Assembly: GCA_002269645.1 (NCBI GenBank)
Contig: NIVC01003089.1
Location: forward strand, 1 to 64,000
DNA from: Macrostomum lignano
Taxonomy: Eukaryota
Length of the DNA: 64,000 bases
Reading direction: 5' to 3'
A model generated the notes under the pieces. It saw nothing but the letters and a program-made list of their open reading frames with translations, had not been told where the DNA came from and did not search any database. The position numbers and the translations under genes were made by a program. Positions 3,439 through 8,400 of the stretch are shown piece by piece. Each line of letters begins with the position of its first letter. The stretch's first letter is position 1.

Positions 3439-5056
3439 GGCGGCGCTATTGGCTTCTTTTAGATCGATAGCTTTTGTTTATTATAAAAACTATTTTAATT
3501 AAATATTGATTAGCTACTATTCTGTTCTTGAATCTATAAAAATATAGCCTTGAAATTTGGCTAAAAAAATCGGCAAGTAAGACAAGCAAGGACGTAGAAA
3601 GTTGAAATGCCTGCAAGCAAATTTCTATAGCTAAAGGAAGAAAATGAGCAATAGCTGCGAAGAAGAAAAACAAGACAAAGACAGAACAGGCACGCAGTAC
3701 TATATAGACTTCAAACATAGACTATGAAATTGATTGATGCCAAAAAAATTCATAGACTACGAGTATACATGTATCTGCGATAAAATTTTGATCGCTGCTT
3801 AATTTTATAAAATCGCTCTGATGCTGCAAGCACTGGACTAATAATTTAACTATAGTACATTTATTATACTAATTAAATAAATTTGCGTGCAATATTTAGT
3901 TATATAACGTGGATAATATAGATAATTACACTATGCCACTACTCGTTAATCTAAGTTATCGTTTAAATATAGCAAAAAGTTTATTAACAAAAAATGATCA
4001 TTTGGGCTAATAAGCAGGGTTTGGTCAAACGAAATTGATTAATCAATAGCTAATGCACGATTACTCGTAAATCAAACTGGTTAGTAGAGTTAGTAAGAAT
4101 TTTATATCAAGGTATATAAATCAAACTGGATGGAGAAGGACCAGATATCGAGACGAAAGACGATTTGAGCTGAGACAATCAGACAGATGGGCTTTGAGAA
4201 GGAGACAGGCCTTTGGTCTAGCGATCGACTAACCCGCGCATCCGTAATTTAACTTAGTTGCGCACCAAAATCTGGTGCTGGCGAGCGTACATGCATGTAT
4301 CATAGTTTTTCAATGACCATTTATTATAAAAGCAAAAACAGTAAGTATATGAATGTATAGTTATAAGTAGGAAGATTCTGTCATCAGTAAACTAATATCG
4401 TAGAAATGCAATGTCTAGTTTGTAGAATGCTAGCTATCTCAGGAAAAACACATACGTGACTATAGTATAGTAAGCATATAGTCAGCTATTATTAAAGCTC
4501 TTAAGCGTTTTTATGAAGTCTATACCGAAAAACTACCAAGTAGAAATTTATTTAGCCATCTACATGTGTATATTCAGTGGGTTTATTTTGGCTAGCTATT
4601 TCTACTCTTTGAAAATTTTTCTCAACTAGAAGCACTGCTTAAAGTACAAGCAATGAAAATTTAAATGGATTATATTCCATCAATTTACGGGAACAAAGTT
4701 AGTTTATAGTAAGATTAGAAAGCTATGAAAATTGTGCGCATTATTATAACTAAAAATAGTTTTTTGTCAATGTAATTAAAACAATTAGGAAGGAAAAATT
4801 GAAATAAAATAGGAATTCATCTATTATAACATATTTTCTTTTAACGGACAGTTAGGTTAAAAGGTGATAAACTTTGAAGTGTTTGTTCCAGATTTTTGTC
4901 CAAAATAACGAATTTGCAGTTTTTTGTCTACTTAAATGGATTGCGATTTTCCCATGGGACTCACCAAACTATAGCCGACACACAGAGTATATCATTATTT
5001 TATTTAGATTGTTACTCAGTCACTCCGAGTGTCACTCGTAATATCACCCCGTCACT

Positions 5057-5062
5057 TTTATT
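5057..5062 (-). terminator. Candidate polyadenylation signal AATAAA for NF1
   Basis: AATAAA on the minus strand about 160 nt after the TAG at 5220. Confidence 0.4.
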
Positions 5063-5219
5063 GTCACTCCGTCTCTCTAATTACAGTCACTCTGTCCCCT
5101 GCACAGAAAGTGTTATTACAGCAAACAGCTGTTTCTGATAAACAAATTCACAAAGTTCAATTGACGCAATTAATTAAAAAATGTAACGCAGCTTTTTTAT
5201 CAAATTTGATTTCTGCACT

Positions 5220-5407
5220 CTACCTGGAAGCCTGCTGCTGCTGCTGTTTCCCCATGGCACTGACAGCTGAGGAGCTGCTAACTAATTGCAGCTGTCTGTT
5301 GCCAGATGGCGCAGCTGCTGTTGCAGAACTTGTTGCAGCTTCTTCGCTTAAACTGTCGTTGGAATTGCTTTCAATTACCATCGAGTTCAGGCCGGCGGTT
5401 GCGGTGG
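5220..5407 (-). CDS. NF1: NF1 exon 28, putative last exon (Ala/Ser-rich, ends [11 protein letters not shown]-stop)
   Basis: In-frame phase-1 acceptors at 5407 (CTGCAG) or 5431; TAG at 5222-5220; low-complexity sequence with no recognisable homology. Confidence 0.65.
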
Positions 5408-8400
5408 CTGCAGGTGGAGCAGAACTTGATTCTTAATTTTGATAATATTCTTCCCTAACTAATCCGAGGGAATTCTCTAAATAATCCGAGGGAATTCCCT
5501 AACTAATCTGAGGGAATTCCCTAACTAATCTGAGGGAATTCCCTAAATAATCCGAGGGAATTCCCTAACTAATCTGAGGGAATTCCCTAACTAATCTGAG
5601 GGAATTCCTTAAATAATCCGAGGGAATTCCCTAACTAATCTGAGGGAATTCCCTAACTAATCTGAGGGAATTCCCTAAATAATCCGAGGGAATTCCCTAA
5701 ATAATCCGAGGGAATTCCCTAACTAATCTGAGGGAATTCCCTAACTAATCTGAGGGAATTCCCTAAATAATCCGAGGAATTCCTCCCATTAATTCGTGGG
5801 AATTTCTCCCACTAATCCGAAGGAAGTCTCAAACTAATCCGAGGGAATTCCCAAACTAATCCGAGGGAATTCCCAAACTAATCCGAGGGAATTCCCAAAC
5901 TAATACGAGGGAATTCTCAAACTAATCCGAGGGAATTCCCAAACTAATCCGAGGAAATTCTTGAACTTATCCGAGTGGATATAAATCCTAAGAGATTCTA
6001 CCTGCTAATCCCAGTCGGTTAATTTCCGATAAATCCCAAGGTATTAACGCCAGTTAAGCTTAATACGCTCTACCACGAACGGTTGGCAACTCACGTTTCG
6101 GCTGAAATTTCAAATGGCAACGACTTCGGACCTCTTCGGACACGGCGACTAAAGCGGTGAGATAGGCCACGCTGCTGGGGGTCACCTCGTACTTGTCTCT
6201 GTGAAATGTTGATTTAGATGTGCATGTGAGCTCTGACCTTTAAATCACCCTTTTATCCCAATTTATCTGTCCTATCCTTAACTCTCACCATTATTCACTT
6301 AGTCACCTCTTTGTCTCACCTCTTATTCTTTACCTCTATTCCTTATCTCTGTCACTTATCTCTGTCCCTTATCTGTATTCCTTATCTCTATCCCTTATCT
6401 CTGTCACTTATCTCTATCCCTTATCTCTATTCCTTATCTCTATCCCTTATCTCTGTCACTTATCTCTATCCCTTATCTGTATTCCTTATCTCTATCCCTT
6501 ATCTCTGTCACTTATCTCTATCCCTTATCTGTATTCCTTATCTCTATCCCTTATCTCTGTCACTTATCTCTATCCCTTATCTGTATTCCTTATCTCTATC
6601 CCTTATCTGTATTCCTTATCTCTATCCCTTATCTCTATCCCTTATCTCTATCCCTTATCTCTATTCCTTATCTCTATCACTTATCTCTATCCCTTATCTC
6701 TATCCCTTATCTCTATCCCTTATCTGTATCCCTTATCTCTATTCCTTATCTCTATCCCTTATCTCTATCCCTTATCTCTATCCCTTATCTCTATCCCTTA
6801 TCTCTATCCCTTATCTCTGTCCCTTATCTCTATCCCTTATCTCTATTCCTTATATCTGTCACTTATCTCTATCCCTTATCTCTATCCCTTATCTCTATTC
6901 CTTATCTCTATCCCTTATCTCTGTCCCTTATCTCTATCCCTTATCTCTATTCCTTATCTCTATCACTTATCTCTGTCCCTTATCTCTATCCCTTATCTCT
7001 ATCCCTTATCTCTGTCACTTATCTCTATCCCTTATCTGTATCCCTTATCTCTGTCACTTATCTCTATCCCTTATCTCTGTCCCTGATCTTTATCCCCTTA
7101 TCACTTCATTGCACACGGGTCTCCTTCCACTCGATATGCAGTGAAACACAAAGTGGCAATAAAAATCGTCAAACAAAAGCAGTCTCACCTCTTCTCAGTT
7201 TTAGAAATAATAGACAGGAGCATAGACAGCACTCGCACAGTTCTAGACACAGTTTTTGGCGTTGGATGTCGAAAACCTTTGAGCAGGTGGCCAACCAGAG
7301 CAAAGTGAAAATTTTCTCTGAATGACAGGCCAACGCAGTTATCCAACTGTTTGTAGTGCAAGATTAGTGGCTGACGGTACTCCATCATTAGGCTCTCCAG
7401 GGAGCGCTCCGTGAAAATGCCTAATGATGAGGGATGTGAGAAAGTATTTCGTAAAATTGAATCTCTTATGAAATATTTTCAATTATCTAAGCTATTAATT
7501 AGCTAGGCTAACTAGATAATTGTCTTCTAAGCTACTACTTGTAATTATCTAGACTAACTAGCTCTAACTGTCTAAGCTACTAATTATCAAGGCTAGCTAC
7601 GCTCGTAGCTCTAACTGTCTAAGCTACTAATTATCTTCTGGGCTACTAATTATCTAGACTAACTAGCTCTAACTGTCTAAGCTACTAATTATCAAGGCTA
7701 GCTACGCTCGTAGCTCTAACTGTCTAAGCTACTAATTATCTTCTGGGCTACTAATTATCTAGGTTAACTAGCTCTAACTGTCTAAGCTACTAATTATCAA
7801 GGCTAGCTACGCTCGTAGCTCAAACTGTCTAAGCTACTAATTATCTTCTGGGCTACTAATTATCTAGGTTAACTAGCTCTAACTGTCTAAGCTACTAATT
7901 ATCTTCTGGGCTACTAATTATCTAGGTTAACTAGCTCTAACTGTCTAAGCTACTAATTATCAAGGCTAGCTACGCTCGTAGCTCTAACTGTCTAAGCTAC
8001 TAATTATCTTCTGGGCTACTAATTATCTAGACTAACTAGCTCTAACTGTCTAAGCTACTAATTATCTTCTGGGCTACTAATTCTCTAGGCTAACTAGCTC
8101 TAACTGTCTAAGCTACTAATTATCAAGGCTAGCTACGCTCGTAGCTCTAACTGTCTAAGCTACTAATTATCTTCTGGGCTACTAATTATCTAGGTTAACT
8201 AGCTCTAACTGTCTAAGCTACTAATTATCAAGGCTAGCTACGCTCGTAGCTCTAACTGTCTAAGCTACTAATTATCTTCTGGGCTACTAATTATCTAGGT
8301 TAACTAGCTCTAACTGTCTAAGCTACTAATTATCAAGGCTAGCTACGCTCGTAGCTCTAACTGTCTAAGCTACTAATTATCTTCTGGGCTACTAATTATC

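Follow-up and report, generated by a model that had tools for sequence, protein, structure and literature searches.

The stretch analysed here, referred to below as the window, comprises 64,000 nt of DNA from the flatworm Macrostomum lignano (positions 1 to 64,000 of contig NIVC01003089.1, forward strand), and its minus strand carries the gene of neurofibromin (NF1), whose 3' part is the main subject of this report. The exons of this gene are found from about 39.6 kb, where an N-terminal one (LPIKTG...SKYKF) is located, to the one at 6198-6095. Pfam profiles registered the RasGAP domain (PF00616) in the open reading frames (ORFs) 20163-20762 (E 6.4e-10) and 17849-18490 (E 5.2e-18), as well as CRAL_TRIO_2 (E 1.1e-19) and PH_NF1 (E 8e-26) on 15409-15987, and the three domains stand in the order expected for neurofibromin. 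The C-terminal HEAT-like region is present through the EEVRSRC motif and was aligned by phmmer to residues 2215-2458 of the 2839 residues of human NF1 (E 1.2e-80). Within this alignment falls the exon designated N-2 (7189-7420, minus strand, donor AG|GTGAGA), which is 65-79% identical in tblastn to NF1 fragments. The following exon N-1 (6095-6198, minus strand, donor C|GTGAGT, phase 1) is 90% identical to a Rhagoletis NF1 fragment (P0077) and is the last one in the window with clear NF1 homology. It ends at the residue corresponding to human 2458, so that approximately 380 residues of the human protein are missing from the window, which agrees with the premise of an earlier note on this DNA that human and fly neurofibromin continue for about 300 residues more.

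Exon N-1 is followed by an intron (6094-5408, minus strand) with a minisatellite of 22-nt period (array 5451-5975, Tandem Repeats Finder) and by a Ser/Ala-rich linker exon (5407-5224, acceptor cctgcag|), which is frame-compatible with the donor at 6095. A stretch of 13 residues in this exon resembles RMIPESGSSENF / RNMSESSSSDTF, found after CH[LV]K in other NF1 proteins. Directly at its end lies a potential splice donor AG|GTAGAG (5218-5225, minus strand), and the apparent stop codon TAG 5222-5220 occupies positions +2 to +4 of the intron in frame. This stop, the AATAAA hexamer at 5062-5057 and the ATG at 3438 of the next gene are all found on the minus strand exactly where the earlier note had placed them. 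Its statement that 3440-5220 is free of NF1-like coding sequence was also reproduced: tblastn (word size 2, E<=10) of four NF1 C-terminal fragments (Rhagoletis, Cryptotermes, Diploptera, Octopus) against the whole 64 kb on both strands gave only noise beyond 6095. No weight can be given, however, to the hexamer as a signal that ends the gene. Eight copies of AATAAA are present on the minus strand of 3440-6198 and 53 in the whole window, which is not above chance, and the copy at 5057-5062 is best regarded as a chance occurrence in an AT-rich intron, not a demonstrated polyadenylation (poly(A)) signal. According to direct reading it lies within a short run of repeated GAGTGAC-like motifs, which the tandem-repeat scan did not report.

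The adjoining contig and the kinase gene

Sequence beyond window position 1 is available on another M. lignano contig, NIVC01004360.1 (17,143 bp, assembly GCA_002269645.1, Mlig_3_7; L001 in coordinates below), the plus strand of which corresponds to the minus strand of the window. Window positions 1-6063 match L001 6067-1 with 99.3% identity, and base-by-base comparison of this 6,063-bp overlap registered 36 differences, all of them indels, without a single substitution; 33 of the 36 are single-base changes in homopolymer length. Since the overlap differs by indels only, the window and L001 represent one locus. Position 1 of L001 is a physical contig end, situated inside an intron 32 nt downstream of the donor of NF1 exon 6198-6095 (window 6063), and in Mlig_3_7 NF1 is split between contigs.

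The search proposed by the earlier note, tblastn of the NF1 C-terminus on the adjoining contig, returned the conserved exons. With seven NF1 C-terminal proteins as queries four matches were obtained on the plus strand of L001, with E values down to 1e-37: 9060-9161 (NVLLNAETLSDERTQALMLAVL), 9327-9440 (TMVRNTTDENESRILYEYLAEASVVFPKVFPV), 9517-9723 (HSLIDAKIN...LQSIGFGGLWRFSGQFTK) and 9954-10145 (AEHFVNLLEAMVETYLPPDD...SPTEK). Five C-terminal exons were delineated on this strand at L001 8757-9161, 9339-9439, 9528-9714, 9957-10167 and 10901-11458, each flanked by canonical ag|...|gt splice sites; their phases agree, and when joined they can be read for 487 codons without a stop, to L001 11458. The encoded protein shows 55-70% identity to the C-termini of NF1 from other animals, aligns to residues 2584-2750 of the 2839 of human NF1 (E 2.5e-51) and contains the conserved motifs NVLL..., an LTVLATLV-like one, EASVVFPKVFPV, GFGGLWRF and LEAMVETYLP; a long Ser/Ala/Pro-rich tail is encoded by the same set of exons. 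Measured from window position 1, all five are about 2.7-5.4 kb outside the window, on the strand of the window NF1 and co-linear with it. The naturally shortened neurofibromin suggested by the earlier note is refuted by these intact exons, and the window contains the entire NF1 gene minus its last five exons.

The gene that starts at ATG 3438 encodes a protein kinase and has the same strand as NF1. Its first exon (3330-3438, minus strand, MDSVEATVEQPKRHDAEF...) matches PAA47700.1 / A0A1I8H298. The second (1999-2370), matched in tblastn by PAA47700.1, codes for an acidic N-terminal region, the third (1585-1903) for the start of the kinase domain, and the fourth (186-414) for the part with HRDIQASNILVD ... 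DFA ... APE, all on the minus strand; the gene then extends past the window start. On L001 its coding sequence (CDS) takes positions 2624-7143, with the stop codon at 7141-7143. The donor at L001 836|837 (window 5224) and the candidate acceptors at 8696-8762 thus enclose it completely, and the first C-terminal exon of NF1 begins approximately 1.6 kb downstream of the kinase CDS.

The L001 exons of this gene translate with 100% identity and no frameshift to PAA47700.1 (BOX15_Mlig014081g2, P0231, 518 aa), which is encoded on NIVC01004360.1 and is a 90%-cluster mate of A0A1I8H298 (P0093, 518 aa). Translation of the window version, used as the query, matches A0A1I8H298 over 100% of its length with 92% identity, a value that is lowered because the window translation is frameshifted; the sole true difference is at residue 126, which is E in A0A1I8H298 and K in both the window and PAA47700.1. 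In the window, exons 2-4 of the kinase CDS (about 1.03 kb) contain seven frameshifting homopolymer indels, at 1844, 1798 and 1697 in exon 3 and at 376, 328, 286 and 260 in exon 4, one of which produces an apparent in-frame stop. A pseudogene was considered for this reason and rejected, since all 36 differences from L001 are indels and the L001 copy translates perfectly. NF1 exons farther to the right in the window are uninterrupted (10308-9841, for instance, is in a single frame), and because they are intact while the kinase CDS is broken, the errors are concentrated in the left 6 kb. The left end of the window has the appearance of a less-polished long-read consensus and may be close to the end of a contig. 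For Mlig_3_7, PacBio reads were assembled with Canu and then corrected with Pilon using Illumina and RNA-seq data; the earlier, PacBio-only ML2 assembly had lower base accuracy (PMC5730564).

The Pfam profile Pkinase (PF00069) matched the window version with E 9.6e-20 and PAA47700.1 with E 2.6e-36 (125.8 bits, cut-off 31.7). Direct reading of A0A1I8H298 revealed the HRD (HRDIQASN) and APE motifs, DFA in place of DFG and a degenerate glycine loop (KGHHAICP). Close relatives were found only among Macrostomum proteins (P0094, 67% identity; P0095, 55%; P0096 and P0097, 47-48%), and paralogues exist elsewhere in the M. lignano genome. Among named kinases, the PKA catalytic subunit and STK32 come nearest, with about 30% identity. 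As judged from its sequence, it is an intact and independent coding gene unrelated to its NF1 host, and its product may be a lineage-specific AGC-like kinase or pseudokinase. Annotation of Mlig_3_7 cuts multi-gene transcriptional units at trans-splice and poly(A) sites and names the resulting genes.g1,.g2 and so on, while about 39% of M. lignano genes are trans-spliced (PMC5730564). Under this scheme the name Mlig014081.g2 denotes the second gene cut from one transcriptional unit (PMC5730564).

The host intron and its predicted splice junction

The intron that harbours the kinase gene begins at window 5223, has its first 5.2 kb in the window (1-5223, minus strand) and runs on past position 1. 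On L001 it would extend from 837 to 8695, 8756 or 8761 depending on the acceptor, so that its length is 7.86-7.93 kb whichever is used. In both versions of the sequence, taken as they stand, the donor AG|GTAGAG has phase 2. Exons starting at L001 8696 (ctccag|A) or 8762 (ggggag|T) continue a stop-free frame from the donor at 5224 in both assembly versions. The best acceptor, with a long pyrimidine tract, precedes L001 8757 (cccag|GGG) and has phase 0. It fits only if the run at 5253 is GGGG, the window version, and that at 5227 is CCC, the L001 version, in which case the donor becomes CAG|GTAGAG. The Ser/Ala exon does differ between the two versions by two homopolymer indels, as the window has an extra G at 5253 and lacks a C at 5227, and its last nine codons are unreliable for this reason (GKQQQQQAS in the window vs GNSSSSRLP in L001). 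The splice from 5224 to L001 is predicted from sequence and may use any of the three nearby acceptors.

Two other assignments were considered and abandoned. ATG|GTAATT at window ~5378 might have served as a phase-0 donor for the acceptor at 8757, but the sequence that follows it is homologous to the linker in NF1 of other animals. A coincidence of the exon end 5224 with the conserved arthropod intron located after ARQQKQ..HQ| was considered as well; the intron positions differ, because an RRQKSWD-like motif (KGWKSFEID) is found in the downstream exon on L001.

What is directly observed at the locus is that the C-terminal exons exist, intact and co-linear with the window, that the kinase gene is wholly between them and the rest of NF1, and that frame-compatible junctions are available. 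Based on this data one can assume, with a probability of about 0.9, that the apparent early end of NF1 is due to a window edge inside a kinase-bearing intron of approximately 7.9 kb, and that the locus encodes a full-length neurofibromin with a nested kinase gene on the same strand. The gene seems short only because the window stops within this intron and because a contig break interrupts it in the public assembly. As the five C-terminal exons on L001 are intact, TAG 5222-5220 can therefore be understood as read-through of the AG|GTAGAG donor. The earlier note had allowed for this arrangement as an alternative, in which 5224 is a donor, the kinase is a same-strand nested gene and the C-terminal exons lie on its far side, and the adjoining sequence matches it, the splice itself being predicted. 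Transcription of NF1 would then run through the kinase gene, the pre-mRNA would be spliced from the donor at 5224 across the intron to the C-terminal exons past window position 1, and the intron would be removed. For the kinase mRNA, two origins are conceivable: a separate promoter, or spliced-leader trans-splicing of the NF1 precursor.

Several observations weigh against this arrangement. In both assembled versions the phase of the donor does not suit the most convincing acceptor, 8757, while the two in-phase acceptors are weaker, one of them being a GAG acceptor and the other having a poor pyrimidine tract. GTAGAG is a non-consensus donor, yet GTAATT, GTAATA and GTGCAT donors at the same locus are equally loose. 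The Ser/Ala exon had no protein match among 1.84 billion representatives, and neither of two NF1 searches returned an M. lignano NF1 protein: the last 261 aa used as a query against a large protein collection gave a best identity of 63%, no Macrostomum entry and only matches of 456 aa or less, and in the search with the NF1 C-terminal profile no Macrostomum name stood among the best 120 of 661 matches. The gene list for L001 holds only the kinase, leaving the NF1 3' exons uncalled, for which the contig end 32 nt past exon N-1, splitting the gene, is an adequate cause. Finally, only the 6-kb overlap between two assemblies or contigs connects the 5' half of the gene with its 3' half.

Competing explanations

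Uncalled downstream exons are also what one would expect if neurofibromin were naturally shortened, with the gene ending at TAG 5220 and the C-terminal exons being a relic or a part of something else, and in the window itself the frame is indeed closed by the TAG at 5222-5220, with no C-terminal homology following. This explanation is hardly credible. The exons in question share the strand of the window NF1, are co-linear with it, have canonical splice sites and run for 487 codons with neither a stop nor a frameshift; their 55-70% identity to NF1 of distant animals is a pattern unlike that of a relic; the only upstream exons to which they can be assigned are the NF1 exons in the window; and the missing gene call is explained by the contig break. 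The continuity might, alternatively, be an artefact of a chimeric or collapsed contig that brought in C-terminal exons from another NF1 copy. As much as 180 Mb of Mlig_3_7 lies in duplicated blocks that are at least 95% identical, and assembly errors are many (PMC5730564); duplicated copies are common in the hidden-polyploid genome of M. lignano, and the join adjoins minisatellites. Nevertheless, the 6,063-bp overlap is free of substitutions and consists of unique sequence that includes the Ser/Ala exon and four kinase exons, while L001 alone holds the Ser/Ala exon, the kinase and the C-terminal exons, so that two copies would each keep the kinase in between. An assembly artefact is, therefore, very improbable.

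Full-length NF1 could also coexist with a substantial fraction of transcripts that end in the kinase-bearing intron and encode a truncated isoform ...ASR* (or ...LPR*). We regard this as unlikely; it would arise through intron retention, an intronic polyadenylation site or the poly(A) site of the nested kinase itself. A nested gene on the same strand does bring a functional poly(A) site into the host intron, AATAAA-like motifs follow the kinase stop at L001 7141-7143, the donor GTAGAG is weak and several AATAAA hexamers lie downstream of 5220. A true end of this kind would combine a stop codon with a functional polyadenylation site and the lack of further coding exons, whereas here downstream exons exist, AATAAA is at background frequency and the stop overlaps a donor. 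Moreover, the representative library holds no protein with the Ser/Ala exon, truncated or not, the missing region is both highly conserved and intact, which implies selection on the full-length form, and nothing was found that speaks positively for a short one. A related and rather speculative idea is that the kinase mRNA is cut from the NF1 precursor, which would couple its expression to that of NF1, and that the kinase poly(A) site ends some of the NF1 transcripts. If it were true, the outcome would be a regulated, C-terminally truncated neurofibromin without the segment matching human 2584-2750.

A full-length NF1 with a nested kinase means that there is no lineage loss of the conserved neurofibromin C-terminus and hence nothing new on dispensability of that region; the result is mainly a correction. 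What is left is a fact at the level of annotation: M. lignano NF1 is split across contigs in Mlig_3_7, its last five exons are uncalled in the gene list for L001 and its linker intron houses a same-strand, Macrostomum-specific AGC-like kinase. The locus as such is ordinary, as nested genes are a well-known arrangement. It does illustrate two traps for window-based scanning, namely a window edge that cuts a gene inside a long intron, and homopolymer indels at poorly polished ends of long-read contigs, which mimic pseudogenes and shift apparent stop codons.

Neighbouring features and known systems

Nearly every intron in this part of the window is filled by a different minisatellite: 548-1165, 2601-3237, 5451-5975, 6330-7102 and 7491-9710. 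Besides the array of about 2.2 kb at 7491-9710, periods of 25/54, 53/104, 22 and 13 nt were registered, and an array near 10.3-10.5 kb is open in frame and inflates the ORF 9715-10965. Such abundance is consistent with the tandem-repeat-rich genome of M. lignano. Upstream of NF1 and on the same strand, window 45507-46667 contains an open frame of 387 codons that matches the amiloride-sensitive sodium channel family (ASC, PF00858, E 9.4e-32). At the other end of the window, segments 55327-57167 and 60966-62829 form a direct duplication of about 1.85 kb with 93.8% identity, which belongs to a repeated block of approximately 5.6 kb (55.3-58.7 vs 60.0-64.0 kb) that repeats ORFs and a CT-rich microsatellite.

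Our search of the literature library found no relevant paper linking neurofibromin and Macrostomum. Better known systems can be compared with the locus. Full-length neurofibromins of human (PDB 7PGR/7R03), arthropods and molluscs have in common with the M. lignano locus the RasGAP, Sec14-like and PH_NF1 domains, the HEAT-like region and the segment equivalent to human 2584-2750. The linker after CH[LV]K is different. In the read-through ORFs of arthropods and molluscs that were retrieved it is encoded by one exon, whereas the M. lignano linker is interrupted twice, by the intron 6094-5408 and by the host intron of ~7.9 kb, and the linker together with the tail is long and rich in poly-Q and Ser/Ala, unlike in the compared orthologues. 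Both linker introns appear to be lineage-specific gains, one of which hosts the kinase. A precursor shared by NF1 and the kinase would resemble the spliced-leader multi-gene units of M. lignano (PMC5730564), in which several genes are contained in one precursor, and the kinase bears a.g2 name.

Of all genes, about 10% are nested in Drosophila and about 1% in human, and roughly two-thirds of the human ones are antisense to the host (PMC4394429), so that the same-strand orientation of the M. lignano kinase is the less common one. The closest parallel is human NF1 itself, which carries OMG, EVI2A and EVI2B in one intron and thus, like its M. lignano counterpart, hosts unrelated protein-coding genes that are wholly intronic (PMC4394429). 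The human guests, however, are encoded on the opposite strand (PMC4394429), occupy a mid-gene intron and include no kinase, while in M. lignano the only guest is an AGC-like kinase gene that shares the strand of NF1 and sits in an intron of the C-terminal linker. Since the nested genes share no homology, the two nestings arose independently.

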